Assembly (NCBI GenBank): GCA_973895155.1
Contig: OZ316898.1
Location: 2,083,927 to 2,147,926, forward strand
Length of the DNA: 64,000 nt
Reading direction: 5' to 3'
Source: Marsupella aquatica
Taxonomy: Eukaryota > Plantae > Marchantiophyta
Shown here: positions 9,922 to 62,280 of the stretch, one piece after another
How positions within the stretch are numbered: position 1 is the stretch's first letter
Layout of the letters: each line of letters opens with the position of its first letter
Made by a program: the position numbers and the translations under genes
The notes under the pieces: generated by a model
Databases searched by the model: none
Told to the model about the DNA's origin: nothing
The model's input: only the letters and a program-made list of their open reading frames with translations

Positions 9922-11610
9922 ATGCCTGGGAGGTGACGAGGTTTTTTTATGACAGGTTTTTCCAGCGTTCATTGTCGATGGTACATTCAGAGTTTCGTCG
10001 CATGAAACTTGATTGTGTGTGGCTGAGCGGATAGGTTAGTGAGTTCTAACGGTGGTTAGAGCTCGCTGATCGGTATCCGTGGTGCGGAGGAATTAAAGTT
10101 TGCGTCGTTCAGGGTTTATTCGTGTTCGACGGTATTTTCGGGGGAGAAACCAGAGATCATTTCTTCAACGATGTGAGCTGTGCGGTGTGCGGGGTGTCGC
10201 ATGTGATAGTTCAAGTTGAAGGTTGGAGCGTGCTGGTCATTTTGGTATCTAGTTTGCTGACGTTTGCGAAACAAGTGCGTCGTGACGAGTGAAGGAGGCG
10301 TTCTGGTTTTTTGACAAGCTATGGTGCTTGTTTTTCCCTAAACCGGATTACTCGTCGTGACGCTTGACTCGGAGGAAGAAATGCAAAGTGTTGAGGCTCA
10401 ACGGAGAGATCATGGCGAGACGGTCATTTTGAGTCCGGGATTGGCACTTGACGCGGAGTGAAGGTGACGCAACAGAAGTTCTTTCTCCGGTGGAGCTTCA
10501 GACGTGCCGGTGCAATTCGGAAACATTTTCATGTCGGCGGTCATCACTTTTCTCATTGGAAACCAAAGCGGAGGCGGCTGAGGTTTGTAACACGGCCTTT
10601 GTGTCATTTTGGGCACATTTTTAAGGTTAGTTTAGGGCATTTTTTGTCCCAATACGGCCCCAATACCCGACAAAACAGGTTCGCCATACGCCCCGGCGTG
10701 CACACCGGCCTCCCACACCCCTTTAAGCGCAAAACATGCTTTTTTGGGCCCAAATACGGCCAAAAACGCCCATACACGGCCCAAAAATGCGAAAATACAC
10801 GCGCTTTGACCCCTTTAAACCCATTTTTTCACGTTTTTTGCTGTTTATACGCGATTCTGGCCGCGAATACGCACGCATTGCCGCGAATATGTGCGCCTTT
10901 GCCAGGGGCTTTAAGACCCCTTTAGAGAGTGTTTTTCTGATTTTTTTTCTCTCCTCCTCCTCATTGGTTGTGCCTCATCCCGGGCCCTATGACCCTCCGT
11001 TTAGGGGGAACGACCCCCTGTGAGCCCTGTTGGACTGTGCGGGAATATTCCCAAAAAAACATAGAGCTGTTTTTCGGCCATCACACAAAGATTCCGTCCG
11101 CAGCACGGTAACTTTTTTGGTTCTTTTTTGGTGAGGACGGTGCCACTGGAGTTAGCAACGCGGCGCACCGATCACATCGCGATTCCGACGACAGGTTGTA
11201 CTTGGTATTTTGGTTATTCTCCGAGGTGGTCAAAACGGGGGAGTTTCCCAAGGTTTTACCCACCCTGACCAAAATTTGAATAACTTTTCTGTCGAATTTC
11301 AATTTTGATTTTGGATTTCAGTATTGGACTCCTAGCTTTGTGGGCTACGCGGCGGTGTTGAGTTTTGAGTTTTATGAGAAGTTTCAAAAAAAGACTTTTT
11401 TCGTGATTGTTTCATATGAGTGACTCGGAGGATATTGGAAGAATTGGCATCGGTGGAGCTTCAGGATCGAGACGGTCAGACGGAAAGTCAGAGGAGGAGC
11501 TGCTACCGTTTGAGGAGGAACTTATAACACCGGTACGATCATCGGTGTGACGTGCAGTGAAGGAAGCCGTGTTACTACCAGAGCTATCGGTAGTAGGGAA
11601 GAAGAGGGAG

Positions 11611-12513
11611 ATGGCTAGATTTGGAGGAGTGAAATTTGAGGTGGAGCAGTATGATGGTCGTACTGATTACTTGCTCTGGGAGAAGCAAGTGAAGGGTGTT
11701 CTACGGGCCATGGGCTTAGCTCATCTGCTTTCATCGCGAGAGCAGTATGATGGAGAGGAGGAGATTTCAGTGAGGCAATGGAGACAGGAGCAGGTGATTG
11801 CTGTCAATGTAGTGATGCTATATCTCAAGCCGCACATCATCAAGCAGCTAGATGATTATGCGGATTGCGCGTCACTATTCAAGGCTCTAAGAGAGAAGTA
11901 CTACCGGGAAGATGCGTCAGACCGGCTGTACAAGAAGTCTCTCTTGATGAGCCTTAGGCTCAAGGAAGGGAGCAAGATGCAGGATCACTTGGATGAGTTT
12001 GACAGTCTAGCGGTTGATCTGTCAAACCTGGGAAAAGGAGTTGAAGATGAGGATAAGGCCTTGCTTCTGCTAAGCTCCTTACCGCCGTCATATCAGGGCT
12101 TGAAACAGGTGCTCTTGTACAGAGATTTGAAGTCCATTTCGTATAATGAGGTGGTAAGCTCTTTACTGTCTGATGATGCTCAGAAGAAGCTCGGTCAATC
12201 ACAAACAGCATCTTCTTCTGGCACTGCGCTCAATGTGAACAGGGGAAGAGCAACGCAGCGTACAAATGGGCAGAACAGGTTTAGATCTACATCACGGGGG
12301 AGATCTAAATCCAGAGGAAAATTGCAAGAGAGGAAGCCTCTTGCATGTAAATCCAGAGGAAAATTGCAAGAGAGGAAGCCTCTTGCATGTTGGAATTGTG
12401 GCAAGCCACGCCACATGAAAAGGGATTGTCGAGTAAAGGTCCCTACTGTCTCTGCTAACGCAGCATCAAGCTCGTATGAGGTAGATTTACTCGATGATGA
12501 TGACATATTGTGA
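11611..12513 (+). CDS. gag: Copia Gag protein
   Basis: 'KFEVEQYDGRTDYLLWEKQVKGVL', UBN2-like 'DKALLLLSSLPPSY' and zinc knuckle CWNCGKPRHMKRDC. Confidence 0.9.
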   Translation: MARFGGVKFEVEQYDGRTDYLLWEKQVKGVLRAMGLAHLLSSREQYDGEEEISVRQWRQEQVIAVNVVMLYLKPHIIKQLDDYADCASLFKALREKYYREDASDRLYKKSLLMSLRLKEGSKMQDHLDEFDSLAVDLSNLGKGVEDEDKALLLLSSLPPSYQGLKQVLLYRDLKSISYNEVVSSLLSDDAQKKLGQSQTASSSGTALNVNRGRATQRTNGQNRFRSTSRGRSKSRGKLQERKPLACKSRGKLQERKPLACWNCGKPRHMKRDCRVKVPTVSANAASSSYEVDLLDDDDIL

Positions 12514-15500
12514 TGTCAAGGTTATGCTCTCAACGTAGTGTCAAATCCAGGTAGTGATGATTGGATTCTAGATAGTGCATGTACTTTTCACATTTGCTCT
12601 AGAAGAGATTGTTTCAGTTCTTACACGGTTTCCAACGGGTCAGTGTTGATGGGAAATGAAATCCCATGTCAAGTTGTTGGACTTGGATCTGTAAGATTTC
12701 AGATGTCTGATGGTGCTGTGAGAACATTGAGGAATGTGAGACATATTCCCAGCATGATGAAAAATCTCATTTCACTTGGAGTTTTAGAGGCAAATGGCCA
12801 TCAATGGAGTTCTGCTAATGGTGTCCTTCAGGTTTCAACTGGTACTAAAGTTGTATTGAAGGGAAAGAGACATTGCAATCTATACGTTATGGAGGGCAGT
12901 GTAGTCTATGATGAAGCCAATGTAACCTTATCTCATGAGGAGACGGCCCGGCTATGGCACTTCCGTTTGGGCCACATGAGTGAAAAAGGTTTGGTTATTC
13001 TTCAGAAGAAAGGATTACTTTCTAATTTGCAATCTTGTAAGTTGGAATTTTGTGAGCACTGTGTGCTAGGGAAGCAGCACAGGAAACCCTTCGGAGTTGG
13101 AACTCACACCAGCAAGGAGGTACTTGAGTATGTACATAGTGATGTGTGGGGTCCCGCCCTTACTCCCTCACATTCTGGACGGTTATACTATGTCACGTTC
13201 ATTGACGATACTCAAGGTATGTGTGAATATACTTTCTACACAATAAGTATGATGTTTTTGCCACTTTTAAGGAGTGGAAAGCCCAAGTTGAAAATCAGAC
13301 TGGTAATAAGGTGAGATATCTTCGATCGGATAACGGCGGTGAATATAGTTCCGATGAATTTGGAACGTATTGTAAAGAGCAGGGGATTACCCGCCATCTC
13401 ACAACAAGCTATACTCCTCAACAGAATGGTGTTTCTGAGAGACTCAACCAAACACTATTGGACCGCTTGAGGAGTATGTTGAGTCAATCATGCTTACCAC
13501 ATGAGTTTTGGGCTGAAGCTGTCAATACTGCAGCTTATTTGGTAAAATTTTCTCCATCCAGTTCTATTGGATTCAAGACTCCATTTGAAATGAGGTACGG
13601 GCGTCCAGCAGATTACTCACATCTGAGGATTTTTGGATGTGATGCTTATGTGCTTACACCTTCCCAGCTTCGATCCAAGCTGGAGTCCAAGTCGAAGTAC
13701 TGCATTTTCCTTGGTTATCAGAAAGGTGTGAAGGGTTATAGGTTATGGGATCCAGTAACCTGTAAGCTAATTGTCAGTAGAGATGTGTCTTTTAATGAAT
13801 CTAGATCATCAAAGGAGGGGGAGAGTTCTCAGGACTCCCATACTGACAAGGGGAAATCTCCCATCCCGGACCGGGTTGAGGGGGAGATTAGTCATGATGC
13901 AGTTCATGACAGGAGAGATGGAGAAGCTCCGGGCTTGGAGCTGGTTCCTATGATGGAACAAGAGGAGAAAATTGTTGTTGGGGTACCTAAAATTCAACCA
14001 GCAGTAGCAACAGATCAGCCTGAGTCATCTACTAGAAGAACTTCAAGTCTTTCTACTAGAGCTCCTACCAGGTATGGTCAATGGGCAGACTCATCTAAGC
14101 TAGATGATATTGACATTGCACCTGATGAAGATGATATGGCTTTGATCTTGGAAGAAGGAGAGCCTTCTTCGTATAGTGAGGCTTGTGCTTCAGAGCAGAA
14201 GCATGAGTGGAATGCAGCAAATGCAGAGGGAGTTGCAATCTTTGAGTGACAACAAGACATGGGAGCTGGTGGAGCTTCCAAGAGGTCAACAAGTGGTGGA
14301 CAGCAAGTGGATTTACAAGTTGAAGGACAGTCCTTCAGAGGGTGGAGATAAGATCTACAAGGCAAGGCTTGTTGCCAAGGGGTTCACTCAGGAGAAAGGA
14401 GTGGATTACAATGAGGTCTTTTCACCGGTGGCTAAGTATTCCACAATTCGGATCTTGTGTCAGCTTGTTGTGTTTTTTAATCTGGTGATGGATCATATGG
14501 ATGTTGTTACTGCTTTTCTCTATGGCAACTTGGAAGAGATGATCTTCATGAGACAGCCACTAGGCTTTATGAAGAAGGGCCAAGAGAACTTAGTTTGCAG
14601 ATTGCTCAAATCCTTGTATGGATTGAAGTAGTCTCCCAGACAGTGGAACAAGCGGTTTGATGATTTCATGCTTGCTCAAGGTTTTACAAGGATGGTGTAT
14701 GATCCTTGTGTGTATACAAAATTAGTCAAGAATGATGTATTTGGTTTCATCATTCTGGTGATCTATGTGGATGACATGCTAATTGTGGCTAAAGATCAAT
14801 CTGAGGTTGACAGTCTCAAGGCAAAATTGAGCGCTGAATTCAAGATGAAGGATCTTAGTAAGGCCAAGAGGATCTTAGGGATGGAGATTTTTAGGAACTC
14901 TGAGACTGGACAGTTGTGCTTGAGTCAAGGCCAGTATGCGAGGAAAGTACTTGCACGAATTCAACATGAAGAACTGTAAGCCAGTGAGTATTCTTTTAGC
15001 TTCACATTTCAAGTTATCATTGGCTTTCTCTCCTACAGATGTTGTGGAGAAAGGTCTGATGGCTAAGATTCCTTATGAGAAGGCAGTAGGCAGTCTAATG
15101 TATTTGATGACTTGTACTAGGCCTGACTTGGCCCTAGCGATGGGCAAGGTTAGCAGATTCATGTCAAATCCAGGGAAGGTACATTGGGAAGCTGTGAAAT
15201 GGATTCTCAGGTATGTGAAGGGAACACAGGACTATGGATTACTATTTGATAACAGATCAAATAGAACGTTAGTTGGCTATGTAGATTCTGACTATGGAGG
15301 CTGTCTGGATACAAGGAGATCTACAATTGGGTTTGTATACACTCTTGGAGGAGGATGTATCAGTTGGAAATCTACCTTGCAGAAGTGCATATCTCAGTCT
15401 ACTACAGAAGCAGAGTATGTTGCAGTAGCAGAAGCTGCAAAGGAAACAATTTGGTTGGATAAGTTGATCGCGGAGATGGGTTTAGAGCATGGAAAAATGA

Positions 15501-15733
15501 CTCTAAACTGTGATAGTCAGAGTGCTCTTCACTTGGCTGCTAACCAAGTGATGGATAGCAAGGTGAAGCACATTGATATCAAGTACCATTTTATCAGGCA
15601 AGCAGTGTCTGATAAAACTTTTGAGCTAGTCAAGATTGATGGAAAGCTCAATCCCGCTGATGCCTTTACCAAAGTGATTCCTTTGGAGAGTTTCTCAAGA
15701 CACCGTGCTACTTTGCAGGTTTTGCAGTTGTAG
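12514..15733 (+). pseudogene. pol: Copia Pol (protease, integrase, reverse transcriptase, RNase H) with frameshifts and stops
   Basis: WILDSAC (PR); WHFRLGH...CEHC, HSDVWG and RSDNGGE (INT); KARLVAKGF and YVDDM (RT); YVDSDY and KHIDIKYHF (RH). Frame breaks near 13210, 14220 and 14955; TAG at 14629-14631. Confidence 0.93.
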
Positions 15734-15940: not shown

Positions 15941-16284
15941 TGTTAGATATTGCTCTAGTCTTGTAACTCTTGTGCTAACCACAGTTAGGCTAACTCGAGT
16001 TAGGACTTAGCTAAGGTTAGCGGTAGTGCTGTTGTGCATATAGCCAGGGCTAATGCCAGACCCTGGTGGAACTTAGGCTCATTGTTACGGAGCTAGTTGA
16101 GAGATAGGAAGAGCTTGTGCTGTGGATGCTTGGTATGGCCGGTCGGCCTAGAGTGCAGTAAAGCTCTTGTGTGTTCCCGTGGACGTAGCCTCATGTGGAG
16201 GTGAACCACGTATCTCTCTATGTCGACTATTGTGCGTTGGATGGTTCATGGGCTTGCCGTTGCGAATGTCGTCTATGCTCAACA
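15941..16284 (+). repeat. 3' LTR
   Basis: Near-identical to 9564-9907 and preceded by a polypurine tract. Confidence 0.97.
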
Positions 16285-19785: not shown

Positions 19786-21919
19786 TTATTCACTTTTGAG
19801 TGTGGATACTTCAAGCACGGCCAGTGGGTAGGGAAAGTCTTTCAGGGCCAGTTGCCTTGAATGCGGCAACCTGTGGACTCTGCCCCCATCCTGACCTCCT
19901 TTTCCCATCCATAATTTCAAAGCAATATTTACTCACGTCACAAGATTCTGGGTATGCCTGGAACCTTAACCAGACATGGCTTACACACCCAGAGCCAAAC
20001 CCAGAGCCAAATCTGTACAGGCACGGCATTCCCTTTATGCAGACTACAGCCTTTGCACCTAGAGTGTTATGGAATATAGCTAGCCATCGGGTGGGTTTGA
20101 CCAAAATATAGCTAGCCAGATCGAAATAAAGCAAATTCAAGACTTTGGTAGTCTCTGTGGGTAGGGAATATGGACAACAGAACAGTGTGGGAACGTGGGG
20201 TACCGCATTATTCTCTGATTGAAAATAGTATTGTCATTTGGAAGACCCTCTGCACCCGTTTCTGAATGCAGTATAATATCTTCAACAAAAGTCGAGGAAA
20301 TTGATGAAACTGCATATCAGAGAATTGGAGAGGAAAAGAAGCACAATCGGATGTGAAGAGCTCGAGCCTAGCCTCAGGTCCTCCACGATCGATACACCAA
20401 GATCAAAGAGTAGTAAGTTCATCAATATGGAACAAAATGCTGGGGTCGAGGGCAGAAGTCTAGGCTATGCTTCTGATTTGCTACGGTACTCGACGTCTAC
20501 AAGCGTTCTACTGCTTGTTGGAGTGTTGACTCTCGTGATTGGCGTGGTGAGCTATGGATCGTGGAGGAAGAAGATTACCAATTTGCCACCGGGGCCCCGC
20601 AATTGGCCAGTCATTGGAGCCCTCTTGGAGATGGAGCCGCTCTTCTACAGGACCTGCGAGAAATTCTCAACGAAGTACGGGCCCGTCGTGTTCTTCCGCT
20701 TGGGAGTTCAATCCATGGTGGTGGTGTCCTCCGGCGAGGCTGCAGAACAGCTTCTGAAACACAAAGACGCGGAGTTTTGCCACAGAACCACCGCAATGAC
20801 CAGATCTGCTGTGAAATACGTAGCGATCGGTGGAAAAGGCCTTCCGTTCTCGAACTACGATGCTGAGTACAAACTGCACAGAAAGCTCCTCGTTACGGAG
20901 AATTTCACCTTGGCAAAGCTCAAGACATCCGAGAAGATCCGGACCCACGAGATGGCAGTCATGGTGGAGACGATAGTCAGCGTAAGCCGGAGCAGTGGCC
21001 ATAGTTCCAAAGTTAGCGAAGAAAATAGTATCACTTCGCCGATTGGCATGCGGTCCACTGTAATGACCATGATCCAGAACATCTTGTTTTCGCTGGCCGT
21101 CGGCAAGAGGTTCGATAGTTTGCCGCCCACGGACAAGCTGAGGGTATTCCCGGAATTGTTGGACAGGCTACTGAAGATCTTCATGGAAGTGAACTTGGTA
21201 AGACAAAGTTCACAGTAGAGCAACAAGCATGGATATCTGAAACATAAGATCATGAATCCTGTTTTTCTTAGTCATATGGTCTGTTTAAGAATTGTCATTC
21301 TGACGGAAACCTCCATAGCTGTTCAATTAAGGTGACAATTCTTTCTAACCCTGAGATGTACTGAACGGCTCCACTGTGCTCCTACGCAGCTAGAAATGAA
21401 ATGAGCTGCTTTTTGTTCTCATCAATTATTGACCTCCAAAGGGTGGCCATTAGGCTAGAGTGTATCAATTACGCGTCTCTTTCCGCTCGAACACCTTGTA
21501 ATCGAGCTAAATTCGATGTGAAGGGTTTTCTATGCCATGGATGATTGCCGAAACACTACCGACGTACAGTGGTCTGCCTGTTTCCGATGAACTACAATGA
21601 ATACAGGACGTAGACTTGTGCATCGTGAGCAGGATTCGCCACGCAATTTGTAATTAACAACTCATATTGCGGCTGTCCGGGTGCAGGTAGATTTGTTCCC
21701 ATGGTTGACGTGGTTTGATCCGCAAGGGTTGGTGAAGATGATGGGAAAGTTTAGCAAAGACCAGAGTCAATTCTACGATAATCTATTCGAGGCGACCAGG
21801 CGAGAAATGAAGCATAAGAGTGAGTCCGGAATTTGGAACGATGCCGACGAACGAAGCTCGGACCGGAGTCTCGTGCATGTTCTTCTCAGGGCTCAAGAAG
21901 AAGGTCAGCTAGACTCATA

Positions 21920-27054: not shown

Positions 27055-29507
27055 ATGGAACAAAATGCTGGGGTCGACGATAGAAGCTAGGCTCTGCTTC
27101 TGATTTGCTATGGAACTCGTCGACAAGCGTTCTACTGCTCGTTGGAGTGGTAACTCTCGTGGTTGCCGCGGTGAGCTATGGATCGCGGAGGAAGAAGATT
27201 ACCAATTTGCCACCCGGACCCCGCAATTGGCCAGTCATTGGAGCCCTCTTGGAGATGGAGCCGCTCTTCCACAGGACCTGCGAGAAGCTCGCAACGAAGT
27301 ACGGGCCCGTCGTGTTCTTCCGCGTTGGAGTTCAATCCATGGTGGTGGTGTCCTCCGGCGAGGCTACAGAAAAGCTTCTGATACACAAAGACGCGGAGTT
27401 TTGCGACAGAAAACCGCCACGACCAGGTCTGCTGCGAAATATACAGTGATCGGTGGAAAAAGCCTTCCCTTCGCGAACTACGATGCAGAGTTCAAACTGC
27501 ACAGAAGGCTCCTCATCACGGAGAACTTCACCTTGACAAAGCTCAAGACATTCGAGAAGATCCGGACTCACGAGATGGCAGTCATGGTGGAGACCATAGT
27601 CAGCGTAAGCCGGAGCAGTGGCCGTAGCTCGAACGATAGTGAGGGTAATAGTACCTCTTCGCCGATTGCCATCCAGTCGACCGTAATGACCATGATCCAG
27701 AACATCTTGTTTTCGCTGGTCTTCGCCAAGAGGTTCGATAGTTTGCCGCCCACAGACAAGCTGAGGGTATTCCCGGAATTGTTGGACACGGTTCTGAAGA
27801 TCTTCATGGAAGTGAACTTGGTAAGACAAAGTCTGCAGTAACCTTAGATATCTAAACACTATAATATCAATCCGCTTTTTCTTTATGTTAAGGGAAGCGT
27901 CCAAGGCTGTTCAATTATGGGGACAAATTTCCTGAATATGTGTGAAATCAGTTAACGGCTCCGCTGTGCACCAAGCAGGGCAGAATGTACCATCGGTTGG
28001 GATGGGAAATGAAATGACATGCTTTTTGTTTTCACCAATTATTGACCTCCAAAAGGACGGGCATTAGGCCAGTGTGGATCAATTACCCGTCTCTTTCCGC
28101 TTGAACACCTTGCAATCCAGCTGAATTCGATCTGAACGGTATTCTTTGCCATGGAAGATGCAGAAAGGCCACCGACGTACATTGTCTGACTGTTCCCAAT
28201 GAACTATTAATAATGTAAACAGGTCTGAGGTAGACTTGTGCATCATGAGCAGGAATCCCCGGGAAATTTGTAATTAACAACTGACATTGCGGCTGTCCGG
28301 GTGCAGGTAGATTTGTTCCCATATATGGTTGGCGTGGTTGGATCCTCAAGGGTTGCTGAAGGCGATGCACAAGTTTAGCAACCAAAAGAGACAATACTAC
28401 GAGACGCTCCTCGAGACGACCAGGCGAGAAATGAAGCATAAGAGTGAGTCCGGAAATTGGAGCGATGCCGACGAAGGAAGCTCGGGCCGGAGTCTCGTAG
28501 ATATTCTTCTCAGTGCTCAAGGAGCAGGTGAGATTCGGGGTGAAATTCTCCCGCAGCTAAACTCATGCCCCATTTACAGCATTGACTATTTGTTTATTCT
28601 TTCGGGTGTCAAGCAAGCTAAGGTAACCATGTGAAGACAACAACCGTGTGTGTGTAAGTGCACCCACGGGAAGAAGGGCTACCATACACAAGATGCACTT
28701 AATAAAACTGATGGACTACTGTGGACTGTTTACTCAATGATCCTGTGCGTAACTATTGATTCACGTACGTAATTCAGGTTCCTTGATCGATAATTCTGCG
28801 AGAGAGGCTTCATGCAATAGTTATTTCGATTATTTGCCACCCTTCTTATTAATAATTACACTCTAACAAATACTCATTTGGGTTACTTAAATTTGTTTTC
28901 CATCTGAATCACTAGGCACCAATATAACCGAGCAGGGTATCATGATGATAATCAATTGCGCTATGGCTGGTGGTACCGACACCGCCAGTTCCCAAGTGGA
29001 GTGGGTGCTACTAGAGGTAGCACGTCACCCGAAGGTGTTGCAAAGACTGCAGGATGATATTGATGGTGTCGTTGGTATAGAACGGCCTTTGGAAGAGGCT
29101 GACCTCCAAGCTATGCCATTCTCAATGCTGTCATCTTGGAATCTATGCGCTTGCATGGGGCTGTGCCTTGCTCGTTTCCTCACGTCAACTTCAGTTGAAG
29201 CCTTCAACCATGTGTGAGTAACCAACCTATAGTAGTGAGACCCGTAGTGAGACTCATTAAGAATTCAGTCGGGGATTCAATTTGAGCATCCTTGCAAGTG
29301 CACGAATTAACAAACTGAACTTTGAATCAATTTGTGTTTAGTTCAATGTTTCATTTCGTAGAATAGAGTTATTCTGAAGCAGAACGAAATCAAATTGCAA
29401 CCGTAATTGATAATCGAGCATTTCAATGGATATTGATACTCGTCATGCATTAGCTTTACAGTCAAAAACTCACTGACATTCTCTCGAGTTGGAATACGAT
29501 CAGGTGG
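27055..29507 (+). pseudogene. Cytochrome P450 (CYP71 clan), copy 2, frameshifted and lacking the heme exon
   Basis: Co-linear with copy 1. Frameshifts near 27087, 27410, 28325 and 29120; GGTDTA I-helix present. The exon-4 acceptor at 29503 is followed after 4 nt by 3' UTR-homologous sequence. Confidence 0.9.
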
Positions 29508-41320: not shown

Positions 41321-42661
<1,341 letters not shown>

Positions 42662-51146: not shown

Positions 51147-54100
51147 ATGTTTTCTTGTTGTTCGGGTGGGGGCTCGACTTCTAAAAGTCCGGACGCATGT
51201 GTATCAAAGAGACTCGAAGTCGATGCCCGAAAGGTATTGATCCCACTGTGCAAACCACAGCACTGCAATAGATCGCTGTCTACTCTGAACTTTTTGTTTC
51301 CAAAATTCTGCTGTGCTCTCCCTTCGCAAACGAAAAGGTAACCCTTTTACACCTAAAATTGACTGATCAGACACTAAAGTTTGAAGGAATTGTGACCACT
51401 TTGGCAATGGATACCTTGGTACTAGCCTGGCAATCATGTTCGATCTAGTTACTTGGCTGCACTTCTGGTTCACTCGGTGTCTCTGATCGATGTTGGCAGG
51501 TGAACGATTCCTTGTACGAGTTGTGGAGGCCATCAGGCACTCCTGAGATGGAGCTTTTATTTTTCCATGGACTCCAATCTGGAGACTCATCAGATGCCCA
51601 TTTACGAACATGGGAAACCGAGGATGGTTCTTCACTTTGGCCCCAGACTTGGTTGGCTCAGGAGTTTCCCACTGCCCGCATATTATGTGTTTCATTTGAT
51701 GGCGCTGTGAGAAAGTGCTCAGGGGGCTTCGACATGCACATCATAGTGGAGAACCTGCTCTCCGATTTCATGCAGGGAAATATTGGACAGACTCCCAATT
51801 GTCCGGTTGTGTTGATTGGCCACTGTTTTGGAGGATTGGTGATTGAAAAACTGTGTTGGGAAGCCAATAACCGGAAGCACGCTGGATTGGAGAGTGCGAG
51901 GGCTAAGGTTGGTGCCTTGCTTGAAAATGTGCAAGGAGTATTTTTCTATGGTACTCCTCACCACGGGACTCCGGGCCTAAGCAAAGCAACAAAATTGGTG
52001 AAGAACAGCCCATTGCTAAGTTTCTACAAAACTTTGAGCAAAGAAGCTAGCAGGCTTGATTTTGAATTTAATCAATTACGTCGAGTTTATGCAACTTGGC
52101 AAGTCTGGGGACTGGGAGAAACTCTCCCAACTGATTGGGTATGAACAATTCTTCACCTCCTGTTGCTTTTTCTAATTTCTATGACTTTGTTCGTCAACTC
52201 CCATAGCTTATCTTGCTAGCTTGTTTTATCCCGTTCGTGTGGTTTTGTAGGGTATATTTCAAGGTGTAGTGGCAGCACCAGAACAGTCTGCTAGAAAAGG
52301 AGATCATTTTAACCTTTTGCCAGTAGACCACCTGTCCATTTGTAAGCCCAAAAATACATCTGACAAGAGGTTTTATTTTCTAACGGAGCTTCTTCGCATC
52401 ATATCAAGAAACTCACAGGTGAGATGGCTCTATCCTACCCTACACCTAAGTCGAGATACATGTTCAAGACAGAACCATCCAATAGGAGTGAATAATATAG
52501 CAGTTATACACAACGATAGGAGCAGATAGAAAAGGCAAGCCTACTAAACTCTAGAGGAATCTCTGAAGCAGACTCAATTCTCTTTGATTGTTTTGAATTC
52601 TAGATACAGATTAAGTGGAAAGTTAGGTTCTATTGAGATTAGTATAAGCGTTACCTGTTTTTCCAATCCCACCTTGTTAGTAGGGCAGGATGATGATTGG
52701 CTGGTATTTGCAACCTATGAGAGCAATCACTAAAATCTGCCTGGGGCCTGGTCATCGCTTTCTGGCATTTGTTGAAGAGAGATTCTAAGTAGTCCCAAAA
52801 TTTGGCTAGGGTCAATTTAGGTTGCTAATGGTAACAAAGTTCTTTTTACACATTACCCCATAGTTCACCACTCATCTAGCTTTAGGAACTTTGTAGAGGT
52901 GACCAAATTATGCGCTTCAACCAGAAATGATTATCGTCAGAGTGACCATTGTAGTTGCTATGTATTGGGAAAATGCATGTACAGATGAGCTGATTCAAAT
53001 TATCTGACCTCGTCAGGTGGCGGTGACTGTTCATGAAGTTTATGGGCTTCCAAAGTATCCTCTTGATTTGAGGAGACGAGCCCTGGATGTGAAGGACAAG
53101 CTCATTCGCGGAGCTACTCTTGGAATTTTTGGCATGGGTGGGATTGGCAAGACCACTCTTGCAAAACAGGCATTTAACATTATGTCCGAAGACTTTGAGT
53201 ACACGTGCTTTGTGGATAATGTGAAAAACATCCCACTACACGAATTGCAGGATCGAGTTCTCAGTCGTTTTCACCACAATGGGAAGAAATCAGATAAGGG
53301 TTCAACCGAGTGGTTTCATATGCAGGACAAGTCAGCTTTAGTTGTCATGGATGACGTAGATGCAGAGGATCAGCTCAAAGTTCTACCACAATTGCAGCAT
53401 TTTGGGACTGGCAGCCGTGTTATCATGACAAGTCGGGATAAAGAAGTTTTCAAATATTATGAGCGTTGCATCATCCATGAGGTTGAGTTTTTGAAACACG
53501 ATGAAGCAAAGAAGCTACTCTGCCAACATGCATTTGGATTGAAGGATGTTCCAGACTTTCTGATTGACAATGTCAATGCAGTGGTTAAAAAATGTGAAGG
53601 GTTGCCCTTGACTTTGGAAGTGATAGGCACATACCTTCGAGACCATGGAGCAAGTGTTCAAGTCTGGAATGAAACTCTACATAGGTTGAGAGAAGCACGA
53701 GCCATAACTGGAGACAAAAGGGACAGAGTGTGGGCTTCCTTGAGGATAAGCTATGATGCCCTGTTACCAGAGGAACAGGAGATGTTCACAGCGGCTGCAT
53801 CGTTTTTCTTTGAACAGCCATTGGACCGGGCCCTTGCAGCATGGAGCAGTCTCACGCAAGCAATGCAGACAACGTGGGGAAACTTGGTGAACAGGTCATT
53901 GGTGAAAGAAATCAACAACAGAGTATGGGTCCACGAGCACCTTCGAGACTTGGCTCAGACTATTTCCAAGGACAGCATTGTTTTGGGGTCTAATGATACC
54001 ACAAACTCAGCAGTGGATCAGTTGAATGACAAGGAGGTAATCGTTCTTCCCAGCATAATTTAGGATTTCCCCCTCTCCTCAGATTTACCTGCTTTGTACA

Positions 54101-57100
54101 CCACTACTTGTAGCTAAGAGATACTGATTTCAGATTCATGTTATCAACTTGCAGGTCACAGCAGGGGGGATAGCAATGAAATATTTGAGGCTTGAGTATT
54201 CTGCCGGTTTCCACACACGAAAGATCCTTCAGTTAGATTCGCTGGCTAAACTAACGGGACTAAAATACATGGATCTAATTGGTGTTTCCTCAGAAGGTTC
54301 GGGAAAGGGTCTCACAAAGAGCATATCTTTGCTAGGTATGTATGGATCACCAGGACCCCAACCGCAGAGAAAGTTCGAGTTCAGCCTCAACAAAATGGAG
54401 AACTTAGCTGTCCTGGAACTATCAAATTGTCGGATCCCACAGGAGTTTCCTGAAGAATTGGGGAACCTGACCAATCTGCGCATTTTGTGTCTTTCTAACC
54501 TAGCGGGGTTGGCCCATCTGCCTGACAATTTTGGGAACCTATCAAGATTGACACGGTTGGAGCTGGAGGGTGTAAGATCACTCACATTGCCAAAATCATT
54601 TGGCAACCTCCTAGCCCTCGAACATCTTGAATTTCGCTTGATACAATTCTTGGCGTTACCTCAAACCTTAGGGAATCTATCCAGCCTGGCAATATTCCGT
54701 ATTATGCAATATGCACGGCTTGAAAGTGCCTCAGTGACAATTACGGATGCTCATGAGCTGCGGACTATACCGGCCTCATTGACAATTTCGGATGCCCATG
54801 AGCTGCAGACTCTGCCGGACAGCTTTTCCTGTCTCAAGTCTCTTAAATATTTGGTATTAGAGTCCTCAAAATTGGAGAGTCTTCCCGATGACATGGGAAA
54901 CCTCTCTTTACTGGAAGAATTGTGGATCGCAGCACCAGGCTTGGAGGGCCTCCCAGATAGCATATGCAAGCTCGGTAATTTGAGGAAATTGACCCTCACG
55001 AAAGCTAAAAACTTGAAGGGCTTGCCGGAGAATTTCGGCCAGCTGCTGGAGCTCCAGCATTTGACAATTTGGGATGCCCATGAGCTGCAGACTCTGCCGG
55101 ACAGCTTTTACTGTCTCAAGTCTCTTAAATATTTGTCATTAGAGTTGGAGAGTCTTCCCGATGACATGGGAAACCTCTCTTTACTGGAAGAATTGCGGAT
55201 CCCAGCACCGGAGGGCATCCCACATAGCATATGCAAGCTCGGTAATTTGAGGACATTGACCCTCATGAAAGCTAAAAACTTGAAGGGCTTGCTGGAGAAT
55301 TTCGGCCAGCTGATGGAGCTGCAGCATTTGGAAATTTGGGGTGCTGATGAGCTGCAGACTCTGCCGGACAGCTTTTCCTGTCTCAAGTCTCTTAAAACGC
55401 TGACATTCGAGTCCTCAAAATTGGAGAGTCTTCCCGATGACATGGGAAACCTCTCTTTACTGGAAGAATTGTGGATCGCAGCACCAAGCTTGGAGGGCCT
55501 CCCAGATAGCATATGCAAGCTCGGTAATTTGAGGACATTGACCCTCAAGAAAGCTAAAAACTTGAAGGGCTTGCCGGAGAATGTCGGCCAGCTGATGGAG
55601 CTGCAGCATTTGGAAATTTCGGGTGCTGATGAGCTGCAGACTCTGCCGGACAGCTTTTCCTGTCTCAAGTCTCTTAAAAACCTGACATTCGAGTCCTCAA
55701 AATTGGAGAGTCTTCCCGATGACATGGGAAACCTCTCTTTACTGGAAGAATTGTGGATCGCAGCACCAGGCTTGGAGGGCCTCCCAGATAGCATATGCAA
55801 GCTCGGTAATTTGAGGAAATTGACCCTCACGAAAGCTAAAAACTTGAAGGGCTTGCCGGAGAATTTCGGCCAGCTGCTGGAGCTCCAGCATTTGACAATT
55901 TGGGATGCCCATGAGCTGCAGACTCTGCCGGACAGCTTTTACTGTCTCAAGTCTCTTAAATATTTGTCATTAGAGTTGGAGAGTCTTCCCGATGACATGG
56001 GAAACCTCTCTTTACTGGAAGAATTGCGGATCCCAGCACCGGAGGGCATCCCACATAGCATATGCAAGCTCGGTAATTTGAGGACATTGACCCTCATGAA
56101 AGCTAAAAACTTGAAGGGCTTGCTGGAGAATTTCGGCCAGCTGATGGAGCTGCAGCATTTGGAAATTTGGGGTGCTGATGAGCTGCAGACTCTGCCGGAC
56201 AGCTTTTCCTGTCTCAAGTCTCTTAAAACGCTGACATTCGAGTCCTCAAAATTGGAGAGTCTTCCCGATGACATGGGAAACCTCTCTTTACTGGAAGAAT
56301 TGTGGATCGCAGCACCAAGCTTGGAGGGCCTCCCAGATAGCATATGCAAGCTCGGTAATTTGAGGACATTGACCCTCAAGAAAGCTAAAAACTTGAAGGG
56401 CTTGCCGGAGAATGTCGGCCAGCTGATGGAGCTGCAGCATTTGGAAATTTCGGGTGCTGATGAGCTGCAGACTCTGCCGGACAGCTTTTCCTGTCTCAAG
56501 TCTCTTAAAAAGCTGACATTCGAGTCCTCAAAATTGGAGAGGCTGCCCGACGACATGGGAAACCTCTCTTCACTGGAAAACTTGCGCATCACAGCACCAA
56601 GCTTGGAGGGCCTCCCAGATAGCATATGCAAGCTCGGTAATTTGAGGACATTGACCCTCAAGAAAGCTAAAAACTTGAAGGGCTTGCCGGAGAATTTCGG
56701 CCAGCTGATGGAGCTGCAGCATTTGGAAATTTGGGGTGCTGATGAGCTGCAGACTCTGCCGGACAGCTTTTCCTGTCTCAACTCTCTTAAAAAGCTGACA
56801 TTCGAGTCCTCAAAATTGGAGAGTCTTCCCGATGACATGGGAAACCTCTCTTTACTGGAAGAATTGTGGATCGCAGCACCAAGCTTGGAGGGCCTCCCAG
56901 ATAGCATATGCAAGCTCGGTAATTTGAGGACATTGAACCTCATGAAAGCTAAAAACTTGAAGGGCTTGCCGGAGAATTTCGGCCAGCTGCTAAAGCTCCA
57001 GGATTTGAGAATTTGGGATGCCCATGAGCTGCAGACTCTCCCGGACAGCTTTTCCTGTCTCAAGTCTCTTAAATATTTGGTATTAGAGTCCTCAAAATTG

Positions 57101-60100
57101 GAGAGTCTTCCCGGTGACATGGGATACCTCTCTTCACTGGAAAAATTGCGCATCACAGCACCAAGCTTGGAGGGCCTCCCAGATAGCATATGCAAGCTCG
57201 GTAATTTGAGGGAATTGACCCTCAAGAAAGCTTAAAACTTGAAGGGCTTGCCGGAGAATGTCGGCCAGCTGATGGAGCTGCAGCATTTGGAAATTTCGGG
57301 TGCTGATGAGCTGCAGACTCTGCCGGACAGCTTTTCCTGTCTCAAGTCTCTTAAAAACCTGACATTCGAGTCCTCAAAATTGGAGAGTCTTCCCGATGAC
57401 ATGGGAAACCTCTCTTTACTGGAAGAATTGTGGATCGCAGCACCAGGCTTGGAGGGCCTCCCAGATAGCATATGCAAGCTCGGTAATTTGAGGAAATTGA
57501 CCCTCACGAAAGCTAAAAACTTGAAGGGCTTGCCGGAGAATTTCGGCCAGCTGCTAAAGCTCCAGGATTTGAGAATTTGGGATGCCCATGAGCTGCAGAC
57601 TCTCCCGGACAGCTTTTCCTGTCTCAAGTCTCTTAAATATTTGGTATTAGAGTCCTCAAAATTGGAGAGTCTTCCCGGTGACATGGGATACCTCTCTTCA
57701 CTGGAAAAATTGCGCATCACAGCACCAAGCTTGGAGGGCCTCCCAGATAGCATATGCAAGCTCGGTAATTTGAGGGAATTGACCCTCAAGAAAGCTTAAA
57801 ACTTGAAGGGCTTGCCGGAGAATGTCGGCCAGCTGATGGAGCTGCAGCATTTGGAAATTTCGGGTGCTGATGAGCTGCAGACTCTGCCGGACAGCTTTTC
57901 CTGTCTCAAGTCTCTTAAAAACCTGACATTCGAGTCCTCAAAATTGGAGAGTCTTCCCGATGACATGGGAAACCTCTCTTTACTGGAAGAATTGTGGATC
58001 GCAGCACCAGGCTTGGAGGGCCTCCCAGATAGCATATGCAAGCTCGGTAATTTGAGGAAATTGACCCTCACGAAAGCTAAAAACTTGAAGGGCTTGCCGG
58101 AGAATTTCGGCCAGCTGCTGGAGCTCCAGCATTTGACAATTTGGGATGCCCATGAGCTGCAGACTCTGCCGGACAGCTTTTACTGTCTCAAGTCTCTTAA
58201 ATATTTGTCATTAGAGTTGGAGAGTCTTCCCGATGACATGGGAAACCTCTCTTTACTGGAAGAATTGCGGATCCCAGCACCGGAGGGCATCCCACATAGC
58301 ATATGCAAGCTCGGTAATTTGAGGACATTGACCCTCATGAAAGCTAAAAACTTGAAGGGCTTGCTGGAGAATTTCGGCCAGCTGATGGAGCTGCAGCATT
58401 TGGAAATTTGGGGTGCTGATGAGCTGCAGACTCTGCCGGACAGCTTTTCCTGTCTCAAGTCTCTTAAAACGCTGACATTCGAGTCCTCAAAATTGGAGAG
58501 TCTTCCCGACGACATGGGAAACCTCTCTTCACTGGAAAAATTGCGCATCACAGCACCAAGCTTGGAGGGCCTCCCAGATAGCATATGCAAGCTCGGTAAT
58601 TTGAGGACATTGACCCTCAAGAAAGCTAAAAACTTGAAGGGCTTGCCGGAGAATTTCGGCCAGCTGATGGAGCTGCAGCATTTGGAAATTTGGGGTGCTG
58701 ATGAGCTGCAGACTCTGCCGGACAGCTTTTCCTGTCTCAACTCTCTTAAAAAGCTGACATTCGAGTCCTCAAAATTGGAGAGTCTTCCCGATGACATGGG
58801 AAACCTCTCTTTACTGGAAGAATTGTGGATCGCAGCACCAAGCTTGGAGGGCCTCCCAGATAGCATATGCAAGCTCGGTAATTTGAGGAAATTGACCCTC
58901 AAGAAAGCTAAAAACTTGAAGGGCTTGCCGGAGAATGTCGGCCAGCTGATGGAGCTGCAGCATTTGGAAATTTCGGGTGCTGATGAGCTGCAGACTCTGC
59001 CGGACAGCTTTTCCTGTCTCAAGTCTCTTAAAAAGCTGACATTCGAGTCCTCAAAATTGGAGAGTCTTCCCGATGACATGGGAAACCTCTCTTTACTGGA
59101 AGAATTGTGGATCGCAGCACCAAGCTTGGAGGGCCTCCCAGATAGCATATGCAAGCTCGGTAATTTGAGGACATTGAACCTCATGAAAGCTAAAAACTTG
59201 AAGGGCTTGCCGGAGAATTTCGGCCAGCTGCTAAAGCTCCAGGATTTGAGAATTTGGGATGCCCATGAGCTGCAGACTCTCCCGGACAGCTTTTCCTGTC
59301 TCAAGTCTCTTAAATATTTGGTATTAGAGTCCTCAAAATTGGAGAGTCTTCCCGGTGACATGGGATACCTCTCTTTACTGGAAGAATTGTGGATCGCAGC
59401 ACCAAGCTTGGAGGGCCTCCCAGATAGCATATGCAAGCTCGGTAATTTGAGGAAATTGACCCTCATGAAAGCTAAAGACTTGAAGGGCTTGCCGGAGAAT
59501 TTCGGCCAGCTGATGGAGCTCCAGCATTTGGATATTTTGGGTGCTGATGAGCTGCAGACTCTGCCGGACAGCTTTTCCTGTCTCAAGTCTCTTAAAAAGC
59601 TGACATTCGAGTCCTCAAAATTGGAGAGGCTGCCCGACGACATGGGAAACCTCTCTTCACTGGAAAAATTGCGCATCACAGCACCAAGCTTGGAGGGCCT
59701 CCCAGATAGCATACGCAAGCTCCTTAATTTGAGGACATTGTGTCTCAGCAACGCTAAGAAGTTGAACAGCTTGCCCGAGGATTTCGGCCAGCTGATCGAG
59801 CTGCAGCATTTGGAAGTTGGTGAGGCTGATGAGCTGCAGACTCTACCGGACAGCTTTTCCTTTCTCAAGTCTCTGAAAAAGTTGATATTAGAATCCTCAA
59901 AATTGGAGAGGCTTCCCGATGACATGGGAAACCTCTCTTTACTGGAAGAACTGTTGATCGCAGCACCAAGCTTGGAGGGCCTCCCAGATAGCATACGCAA
60001 GCTCGGTAATTTGAGGGAATTAACTCTGAGCAACGCTAAAAACTTAAAGGGCTTGCCGGAGGATTTCGGCCAGCTAATGGAGCTGCTGCATTTGGCAATT

Positions 60101-62280
60101 GGTGATGCTGATGAGCTGCAGACTCTACCGGACAGCTTTTCCTGTCTCAAGTCTCTTAAAAAGTTTACATTAGAATCCTCAAAATTGGGGAGGCTTCCCG
60201 ATGACATGGGAAACCTCTCGTTACTGGAAGAATTGTGGATCGCAGCACCAAGCTTGGAGGGCCTCCCAGATAGCATACGCAAGCTCGGTAATCTGAGGGA
60301 ATTGACCCTGAAGAACGCTAAAAACTTGAAGGGCTTGCCGGAGAGTTTGGGCCAGCTGATGGACCTGCAGCATTTGGAAATTTGGGGTGCTCATGAGCTG
60401 AAGACTCTACCGGACAGCTTTTCCTGTCTCAAGTCTCTTAAAAAGTTGGCATTAGAATCCTCAAAATTGCAGAGTCTTCCCGATGACATGGGAAACCTCT
60501 CTTTACTGGAAGAATTGTGGATCGCAGCACCATGCTTGGAGGGCCTCCCAGATAGCATACGCAAGCTCGGTAATTTGAGGGAATTGACTCTGAATAACGC
60601 TAAAAACTTAAAGGGCTTGCCGGAGGATTTCGGCCAGCTAATGGAGCTGCTGCATTTGGCAATTGGTGATGCTGATGAGCTGCAGACTCTGCCGGACAGC
60701 TTTTCCTGTCTCAAGTCTCTTAAGAAGTTTACATTAGAATCCTCAAAATTGGGGAGGCTTCCCGATGACATGGGAAACCTCTCGTTACTGGAAGAATTGT
60801 GGATCGCAGCACCAAGCTTGGAGGGCCTCCCAGATAGCATTCGCAAGCTCGGCAATTTGAGGGAATTGACCCTCAAGAAAGCTAAAAACTTGAAGGGCTT
60901 GCCGGAGAGTTTCGGCCAGCTGATGGAGCTACAGCATTTGGAAATTTCGGGTGCTGATGAGCTGCAGACTCTGCCGGACAGCTTTTCCTGTCTCAAGTCT
61001 CTTAAAAAGTTTACATTAGAATGCTCAAAATTGGAGAGACTGCCCGACGACATGGGAAACCTCTCTTTACTGGAAGAATTGTGGATCGCGGCACCAAGCT
61101 TGGAAGGCCTCCCAGATAGCATAGGCAAGCTCTGTAATTTGAGGACATTGACTCACAAATTTTAGAGACTTGAAGGGCTTGCCGGAGGATTTCGTCCAGC
61201 TGATCGAGCTGCAGGACTTGGGGATTTCGGGTTTTGATGAGCTGCACACTCTTACCGGACATCTTTTCCTGTCTCAAATCGCTTCAAAAGTCGACATTAC
61301 AATGCTGATAATTGGCAAGGCTTCCCAAGAACATGGGAAAACTCTCTTTACGGGAAAAATTGTGGATCGGCACCAAGCTTGGAGGGCCTCGCATATAGCG
61401 TACTTCAGCTCCGTAATTTGAGGACATTGACTCTCACCAATGCTGAAAACTTGAAGAGTTTGCCGGAGGATTTTGGCCAGCTGAGCGATCTGCAGGATTT
61501 GACAATTTGGGATGCCGATGAGCTGCAGACTTTACCGGAGAGCTTCTCCCGTCTCATGTCTCTTAAAAAGTTGACATTAAAGTGCTCAAAATTTGAGAGG
61601 CTGCCCGACAATTTCGGAAAACTCTTTTGCATAGAAGAATTAAATATCCGGTCAAGAAGCTTGGAAAGTCTGCCGGAGAGCATACGGCAGCTTCAGTCGC
61701 TGGAAAATATGAACCTTGCGGCGGGAAAAAGCGAGAGGAATCTACTAGATAGCATCGGACAAATTTCATCGTTACGTAAGTTGGAATTCGATTGCGATGG
61801 GCATGAGGAGACACCCGACCTTTTTGAACCCTTTTAATGCTTTGAACATGAGCTAATTCTCACAGGGCGAGGTACACGGATCCTGCCGCAGGTTTGGGTA
61901 GCCTTTCCTCATTAAAAGCCCTGGGTCTGAAACAGTTACCGCTTTTGGAGACGTTACCGGATGATGTTGGAACTCTCTCTTCTCTAGAACGCTTCACCGT
62001 GATGGATTGTAATATGTTGGAGAGCCTTCCGGACAGTTTGGGGCAAGTCTCTTCTCTGAAAGACGTCATGTTTGTCAGTTGCCAGAGACTGAAGACTCTG
62101 CCTGAAAGCTGGGGAAAGTCCGCGATTCAACGAGAATTGCTGCAAGGAGACCTTTCTGTTGAGCATAGGTTGCAAACAGAGGAGTCCTCCCAGACCAAGA
62201 AAACGGAGGTGATGCCACTAATCATTATAGGGTGTCCCTTGATGAGTCGAAGCGGGGAAGTTTCGGTCACCCAATTCTAA
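51147..62280 (+). CDS. Alpha/beta-hydrolase-NB-ARC-LRR immune receptor (HNL-type NLR) with giant LRR array; open frame ends at a premature TAA at 57233-57235
   Basis: Phase-0 exons 51147-51233, 51500-52138, 52251-52418, 53017-54036 and 54155 onward. Hydrolase motifs LLFFHGL, WPQTWL, GHCFGG, FFYGTPHHG and DHLSICKP. NB-ARC motifs: P-loop GMGGIGKTT, LVVMDDV, GSRVIMTSRD, GLPL and VHE. LRRs continue to about 62110. The protein is about 1660 aa up to the first stop. Confidence 0.92.
54779..61700 (+). repeat. Intragenic tandem array of about 25 x 282-bp units (94 aa = 4 LRRs of 23/23/24/24 aa)
   Basis: 'LQTLPDSF' recurs every 282 bp (267 bp in a deletion variant), with higher-order 831-bp and 564-bp duplications. 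Confidence 0.97.

Follow-up and report, generated by a model that had tools for sequence, protein, structure and literature searches.

A large leucine-rich-repeat cassette array in a predicted liverwort Hyd-NLR gene, probably shaped by unequal exchange and gene conversion

The window analysed here is a stretch of 64,000 nucleotides from the liverwort Marsupella aquatica (assembly GCA_973895155.1, contig OZ316898.1, positions 2,083,927 to 2,147,926 of the forward strand), and the subject of this study is a gene in it that carries a tandem array of 282-bp cassettes in its leucine-rich repeat (LRR) exon. Judged from its sequence, the array-bearing gene is predicted to be an immune-receptor gene of the hydrolase-NB-ARC-LRR type (Hyd-NLR, NLR standing for nucleotide-binding LRR receptor), because the same N-terminus is found together with an NB-ARC domain and LRRs in its relatives from Calypogeia fissa. 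Hyd-NLRs are a described class that is enriched in non-flowering plants (PMC11218826). The closest relatives found were "unnamed protein products" of the leafy liverwort C. fissa with a hydrolase-like N-terminus, NB-ARC and LRRs, and the N-terminus encoded in the window is collinear with two of them, P0001 and P0002. Outside the array, the gene is laid out as follows.

51147..51233, plus strand: probable first coding exon, starting MFSCCSGGG (frame translation and by-eye alignment with the N-terminus of C. fissa P0001; end approximate)
51500..52141, plus strand: exon of the N-terminal alpha/beta-hydrolase-like domain, with FFHGLQ, the GHCFGG elbow and YGTPHHG (translation; domain order as in P0001 and P0002)
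52251..52418, plus strand: probable exon for the end of the hydrolase-like domain, VAAPEQSARKG...VDHLSICKP (the corresponding P0001 stretch matches; limits approximate)
53017..54063, plus strand: NB-ARC exon, with the P-loop GMGGIGKTT and GLPLTLEV (Pfam PF00931)
54149..54799, plus strand: unique, non-amplified LRRs 5' of the array (single-copy in contigs of public sequencing runs)
61835..62280, plus strand: C-terminal tail, homologous to that of the C. fissa orthologue (broken by a stop at 61835-61837 and a frameshift near 61900)

The NB-ARC domain matched Pfam PF00931 with an E-value of 7.9e-36 (124 bits against a cut-off of 23.5), and the LRR domain matched PF23598 (LRR_14) with E-values of 1e-109 and 2e-129, LRR_8 and LRR_13 also matching. 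The sole Pfam match of the hydrolase-like exons was Abhydrolase_6, which was weak (E=0.0065) and below the cut-off; the related matches P0046 and P0082 carry PF05057. Since the NB-ARC exon and the open reading frame (ORF) of the LRRs lie in different frames, an intron is predicted near 54064-54148. At the elbow (GHCFGG, window 51818-51835), Cys stands in place of Ser. The corresponding motif is GYCFGG in the C. fissa orthologue P0001, GHCIGG in P0041 and P0083, and GHSFGG in P0002 and others, and the Cys variant is thereby conserved in a subgroup and is no private mutation.

Tandem Repeats Finder reported a single array in the LRR exon (54784-61608) with a period of 282 bp, 24.4 copies and 89% matches, and no copies of the 282-bp cassette were found outside the array elsewhere in the 64-kb window. 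Read in the frame opening at 54149, the array consists of 23 in-register units of 94 residues (u01 to u23) followed by two degenerate units. Every unit codes for four LRRs of 23-24 residues each, and the sensor domain would thus comprise about 100 LRRs. The array consists of the following parts.

54800..59548, plus strand: young homogenised core, u01-u17, a mosaic of exact copied segments (282 bp per unit; u02, u05 and u13 are 267 bp)
59549..61240, plus strand: older, more diverged units u18-u23 (85-96% identity to each other and to the core)
61163..61801, plus strand: degenerate end of the array, where a stop at 61163-61165 precedes frame changes and a double stop, and the two last diverged units are then back in frame

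The core units are mutually 89-100% identical, and the last two diverged units gave blastn identities of 81% and 75%. Units 2, 5 and 13 (55082-55348, 55913-56179 and 58154-58420) are identical short units of 89 residues; they are 15 bp shorter, having lost 9 bp in LRR A and 6 bp in LRR B, which leaves these LRRs with 20 and 21 residues, and they always come after a unit ending in ..TIWDAH. When internal-repeat coverage was measured by an ungapped diagonal scan, 80% and 97% of the two long ORFs fell into windows that reach 85% identity or more at offsets of 94, 188 and 277. The array thereby has high internal conservation, for which repeats must exceed 85% identity across 100 residues or more. 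At the 5' edge of the array there is also a 45-bp direct duplication (54728-54818, 2 copies, 86%; TITDAHELRTIP and TISDAHELQTLP), which resembles a partial unit that marks the boundary of the array.

The original prediction, made from the letters of this DNA, had described a few discrete alleles in each of the four LRR slots (A to D) that recur in different combinations, and had attributed them to repeated unequal crossing-over or gene conversion at sub-unit scale. When we translated the array unit by unit, every allele it had named was present: KYLVL, KTLTF, KNLTF, KKLTF and short KYLSL in slot A; LWIAAPG, LWIAAPS, LRITAPS and LRIPAP in slot B; RKLTLTK, RTLTLKK, RTLTLMK, RTLNLMK and RELTLKK in slot C; and TIWD, EIWG, EISG and RIWD in slot D. 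Further alleles beyond that list are ENLRITAPS in u07, RKLTLKK in u15, and RKLTLMK and QHLDILG in u17. The two shuffled combinations that it had singled out were also found exactly: KTLTF has LWIAAPS as its partner in u03 and u06 and LRITAPS in u14, and PGDMGY is joined to SSLEKLRIT in u09 and u11 but to LLEELWIA in u17. In the nucleotide alignment of the 23 units, 108 columns are variable, and these form patches at the xxLxLxx strands of all four LRRs. All positions with at least 3 states in u01-17 (residues 17, 19, 40, 44, 63, 67, 89 and 91) lie in these strands.

Shuffling of this kind needs recombination between units, by unequal crossing-over and/or gene conversion, and several observations bear on it. 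First, 176 of the 496 informative site pairs were incompatible among the 12 distinct units within u01-u17. Second, a permutation test of the pairwise homoplasy index (PHI) type, a check proposed along with the original prediction, gave p=0.002 for u01-17 with 2000 site permutations; the p-value for u01-22 was 0.001, and for the older units u18-u23 the signal was not significant (p=0.35). Third, the Hudson-Kaplan minimum number of recombination events (Rmin) was 4 within one 282-bp unit for u01-17, with the intervals at columns 50-90, 100-110, 110-188 and 188-235, and 10 for u01-22. Fourth, all four combinations of the A patch (KYLVL vs KTLTF, 7 nucleotide differences) and the B patch (LRITAPS vs LWIAAPS, 5 nucleotide differences) occur, carried by u09/u11, u17, u03/u06 and u14, and recurrent mutation is therefore excluded as their explanation. 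Finally, the distance matrices of non-adjacent slots were uncorrelated in Mantel comparisons (r about 0; A-B r=-0.06, A-D -0.06, B-D 0.02), so that the congruent slot trees expected from whole-unit duplication alone were not found. Neighbouring slots were correlated (A2-B r=0.52; C-D 0.26-0.49), and linkage was strong across the unit border, where ..WDAH is always followed by a KYL-type unit and ..GAD always by K[T/N/K]LTF.

The exact repeats within the array show what kind of exchange is involved. A 612-bp exact repeat at an offset of 564 represents a perfect 2-unit tandem duplication, in which u08+200..u10+247 equals u10+200..u12+247, and an 821-bp exact repeat at an offset of 831 represents a 3-unit duplication, the match resuming past one mismatch that turns KNLTF into KKLTF. 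Exact repeats of 712 bp and 352 bp lie at an offset of 2241, which is 8 units apart, and one of 349 bp lies at an offset of 1959, which is 7 units apart; those of 578 bp and 322 bp lie at the derived offsets 3072 and 1677. The offsets of the long exact repeats are thus whole numbers of units, and their ends fall inside units. The duplications overlap and overwrite each other, with at least 4 distinct offsets (564, 831, 1959 and 2241) in their history. When the 4.66 kb from u01 to u17+198 were parsed greedily into longest exact copies, 18 phrases and a single private base, at u07+119, accounted for the whole (phrase lengths listed: 48, 40, 793, 588, 243, 69, 349, 204, 421, 564, 390, 76, 304, 45, 130, 311 and 90 bp). 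The copied segments are 40-793 bp long with a median of about 243 bp, mostly 0.2-3 units; units 18-23 have many private bases.

Several points follow from this parse. With one private base in 4.66 kb, the exchange events must be very young on the time scale of point mutation. Most exchanged pieces measure 0.2-3 units, and the LRR slots are therefore not the units of exchange. Accordingly, the part of the original prediction that called for unequal crossing-over or gene conversion between units was borne out by PHI, Rmin, the slot distances and the linked blocks, but its shuffling of modules at sub-unit scale was not, as the segments measure 40-793 bp and several of them span 2-3 units. The discrete look of the slot alleles comes from the confinement of variation to short patches and from a negligible amount of point mutation since the latest exchanges. 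Junctions can be mapped only to the invariant stretches between variable patches, a resolution at which a preference for LRR borders cannot be read.

These results also bear on the proposal that whole units were duplicated and then diverged without any exchange between them, the point mutations being independent or convergent. Recurrent mutation could indeed account for a few of the single-nucleotide incompatibilities, such as K/T in u15 at residue 63 and N/K at residue 17. However, the four-gamete violations involve 5-7 linked substitutions, PHI gave p=0.002, exact segments of up to 821 bp end inside units, and the core holds only the one private base. We give this proposal practically no chance. 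Duplication with point mutation alone was ruled out as a candidate by the exact repeats, PHI, the parse and the four-gamete blocks.

The homogenised centre, the diverged edges and the higher-order repeats of whole numbers of units together indicate concerted evolution of a tandem array. We suggest that tandem amplification of the 282-bp four-LRR cassette would have inflated the sensor domain to about 100 LRRs, and that cassettes with 90-100% identity would then pair out of register, leading to unequal exchange and gene conversion. The partners could be sister chromatids or homologues, or the exchange could proceed by template switching during replication. Each event would duplicate, delete or overwrite one to several units and leave a junction somewhere inside a unit, and successive events would reassort the few variant patches at xxLxLxx positions, which may give the array its "combinatorial" picture. 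The process appears to be germline and mechanical, as in concerted evolution, rather than programmed. Taken as a whole, the explanation that this gene and its array represent the LRR exon of a Hyd-NLR shaped by unequal exchange or conversion has, in our estimate, a probability of about 0.8.

Some points weigh against this explanation. First, crossing-over, replication slippage and gene conversion cannot be distinguished from one haplotype. Second, the unit order is that of the assembly alone, as no contig spans the array. Third, the 5' part is an intact ORF that comprises the hydrolase-like domain, NB-ARC, the unique LRRs and units 1-8, and the gene may still make a receptor by means of this part. 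Finally, the whole-unit ratio of nonsynonymous to synonymous polymorphism (pN/pS) was 1.28 in the core vs 0.52 in the older units, and this value, together with the variable residues at predicted ligand-contact positions, hints that a purely mechanical account may understate function.

Here, we need to consider whether mis-assembly or polishing could have made the unit order, the unit number or the mosaics of this 7-kb array. The public data consist of four runs from two studies, each containing 34-63% of the sampled words and available as short contigs only, and contig depth is a poor measure of copy number in them; contigs also drop rare variants. The unique flank occurs once in the run contigs and array segments have 2-9x the flank depth; k-mer depth climbs with the copy number in the assembly, from 1x to about 9x, which argues against an artefact, although the ratio reaches just 0.5-0.8 of what the assembly predicts. 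Exact contigs from independent runs cover the u17 combination (59285-59395) and that of u09/u11 (57084-57155), and local combinations including the u17 mosaic are found in runs of two studies. The junctions show clean higher-order repeats of whole numbers of units rather than random chimeras, and the frame is kept across 23 units. On the other side, short-read assemblies do not render repeats of high internal conservation reliably (PMC12222747), and the array is spanned by neither a contig nor a read. Weighing these points, we consider an artefact improbable. The mosaics of the original prediction were accordingly recovered in part, the u17 and u09/u11 combinations being present in short contigs; contigs that bridge the u14 junction or the stops were found in none of the listed pieces of the four runs.

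The depth of one segment deserves mention. In run X2, the u09/u11 segment (57084-57155) has 0.9x the flank depth vs 2-2.5 copies in the assembly; X1 and X2 are different samples under one organism code. The 564-bp duplication may, by a hint from contig depth, which measures copy number poorly, be missing from some samples.

The reading frame of the array is interrupted, with the following stops in the frame that opens at 54149.

57233..57235, plus strand: in-frame TAA in unit 9 (KKA*NLKG; AAA in other units), the first stop of the frame
57797..57799, plus strand: the unit 11 copy of this TAA, made by the perfect 2-unit (564-bp) duplication

Since the TAA was copied into unit 11, the array must have kept rearranging after the nonsense mutation arose. 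Further lesions lie 3' of these when the sequence is compared with the tail of the C. fissa orthologue: the stop at 61163-61165, with frame changes and a double stop in the next unit, and then the stop and frameshift that break the C-terminal tail. Units 9-24 are probably untranslated in the present allele, and much of the mosaic would then form no current binding surface. The "mosaic binding surfaces" of the original prediction were not supported by this result. The allele is likely to be either truncated at unit 9 or a pseudogene, and no RNA run containing the stretch was found among the public runs searched. The variants themselves probably arose under selection in a working receptor, because the positions with at least 3 residues are all x of xxLxLxx; the present reshuffling would need no selection.

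The same observations can be read as signs of an adaptive diversity generator, in which the cassette array is maintained because the frequent gain, loss and shuffling of cassettes yield new receptor specificities in the population. This reading is compatible with the mechanism proposed above and differs from it by claiming selection for instability, the allele with the stops being one inactive variant of many. It would account for the placement of the multi-state positions of u01-17, all in xxLxLxx strands, and for the higher pN/pS of the core than of the older units, and it is in line with the independent amplification of other cassettes in the C. fissa orthologue and paralogues, with the depth that hints at fewer u09/u11 copies in some samples (0.9 in X2 vs 2.5 in the assembly), and with the fungal precedent (PMC4986451, PMC12222747). 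However, the nonsense codon has itself been amplified and 3' frameshifts are present, the C. fissa orthologue likewise has a stop within its array, and a dead gene too gives a pN/pS near 1. Based on these observations, we regard selection for instability as possible but rather unlikely.

The original prediction had further compared the array with the cassette assembly of lamprey variable lymphocyte receptors (VLR). Carried to its end, this comparison would mean programmed somatic assembly, in which an expressed site would receive cassette copies in the course of development, so that the receptor differs between cells or plants. The formal resemblance alone speaks for it, and the cassettes 3' of the stop could in principle be silent donors for the translated 5' units. 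However, the cassettes are in frame within one exon instead of flanking it as donors, the rest of the window has none, and the four runs, whose contigs are weak evidence on this point, list neither alternative joints nor variant letters for the array. To our knowledge, nothing comparable to VLR-like somatic assembly is known in plants. We therefore consider such assembly highly improbable, and the comparison did not hold, with no donor cassettes outside the gene in the window and no alternative joints in the runs.

We then compared the array with that of the orthologous locus in C. fissa (L001, GCA_965154635.1). That locus carries 4.2 copies of a 486-bp cassette, which are 96% identical and overlap homologous LRRs. 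Its array contains an in-frame stop at 16103-16105 (SLPESIG*LHNL), beyond which a further 382 codons are open as far as the conserved C-terminal tail, and the annotation splits the L001 gene at this internal stop. The two species thus have two different cassettes, each with an internal nonsense codon. A recombination test on the C. fissa array had no power, as the informative sites of its four copies all show one pattern (c1 and c3 vs c2 and c4). In P0002, another Hyd-NLR from C. fissa, a unit of two LRRs (about 48 residues) is repeated about 17 times. Among the hits examined, 5 of the 13 C. fissa, 2 of the 4 Riccia, both Sphagnum and 3 of the 7 angiosperm NLRs contain LRR blocks with at least 85% identity, in a sample that is biased by the repetitive query. 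We also observed large repeats in other proteins: 96% of P0008 is covered by a near-identical internal repeat at an offset of 554 aa, P0005 (Closterium) has very large near-identical internal repeats, P0007 (Sphagnum) is covered over 56% with periods of 24 aa and 281 aa, and P0075, a Pyrus TNL (a TIR-type NLR), has repeat periods of 92 and 184 aa. Some of the large internal repeats in P0008, P0005, P0007 and P0075 may be artefacts of annotation or assembly.

A bolder proposal would join these observations. The array would be a land-plant LRR counterpart of the fungal NLR sensors with high internal conservation, hypermutable, with turnover fast enough, perhaps even in clonally growing haploid gametophytes, to generate new Hyd-NLR specificities; the cassettes separated by the stop would be a silent reservoir that can be converted into the translated 5' units, and the recurrent independent amplification of cassettes, with an internal stop each time, in this gene and the C. 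fissa orthologue would be a feature of the system and not decay. We consider this proposal unlikely.

Elsewhere in the window, the following features were identified.

5538-6446, minus strand: DDE_Tnp_4 transposase
11557-15733, plus strand: copia-type long terminal repeat (LTR) retrotransposon (gag, zinc knuckle and integrase parts)
20301-21218 and 27110-27841, plus strand: two cytochrome P450 fragments or exons
41324-42025, plus strand: WDR5-like WD40 gene

Among known systems, the lamprey VLR shares with the liverwort array the occurrence of LRR modules in differing combinations. However, VLR genes are assembled somatically in lymphocytes from flanking donors, by a copy-choice process that resembles gene conversion, while the liverwort array is contiguous germline coding sequence, and the VLR analogy fails on its defining features. 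In the TIR-NLR genes flax M/L and Arabidopsis RPP5, the LRR region contains direct repeats, and intragenic unequal exchange alters both repeat number and specificity; these genes have two to a few repeats, compared with two dozen here. A closer structural parallel is provided by tomato Cf-2/Cf-5, which likewise have near-identical multi-LRR super-motifs in tandem within one gene, and for which duplication of super-motifs has been proposed and LRR number varies between homologues (PMC4030839). In contrast to Cf-2/Cf-5, which are extracellular receptor-like proteins with a 2-LRR super-motif and 18-33 LRRs, the present gene is predicted to encode an intracellular Hyd-NLR with a 4-LRR cassette repeated about 24 times and interrupted by stops. 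Tandem LRR super-motifs are therefore already known, and the liverwort array is notable for its scale, which is unusually large. In domain structure the gene agrees with the Hyd-NLR (HNL) class of bryophytes, having an alpha/beta-hydrolase-like N-terminus followed by NB-ARC and LRRs (PMC11218826). It differs from the described Hyd-NLRs by its Cys elbow (GHCFGG) in place of Ser, and by an array of a size not reported for them in the parts of the literature consulted.

The array offers a quantified case of concerted evolution within an immune-receptor gene of a non-flowering plant, and its comparison with C. fissa indicates that orthologues amplify different cassettes at the same place. It also gives two warnings: short reads do not suffice to annotate or compare such genes, and neutral array dynamics in a truncated allele can mimic "combinatorial design". 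Should populations contain intact, polymorphic alleles, the locus would lend itself well to measuring, in a haploid plant, the rate at which repeat shuffling produces new NLR specificities.

The closest working analogy would seem to be that of the fungal NLRs with highly conserved internal repeats. In HET-D as well as HET-E and HET-R, of the NWD family of Podospora, the sensor repeats are 80-100% identical (PMC4986451, PMC12222747, PMC1805685). The repeats of such fungal NLRs undergo concerted evolution, are shuffled within and between genes by unequal crossing-over and vary in length; positive selection acts at contact positions, alleles with stops in the repeats occur, and the shuffling of highly conserved WD40, ANK and TPR cassettes has been proposed to yield new specificities (PMC4986451, PMC12222747). 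Experience with these fungal genes shows that it takes long reads to settle the order of the units (PMC12222747). The liverwort array shares with them the near-identical sensor repeats, the concerted evolution and the stops in repeats, and it may share the variability at ligand-contact positions, which are here predicted. There are also differences. The repeats here are LRRs and not WD40, ANK or TPR, and the fungal survey found no NLRs with LRRs. In addition, the fungal unit of exchange is one 42-aa repeat, and population polymorphism and function are demonstrated in fungi, compared with one assembled haplotype here. With these differences kept in mind, we suggest that the LRR sensors of bryophyte Hyd-NLRs can match the WD40, ANK and TPR sensors of fungal NLRs in repeat instability.

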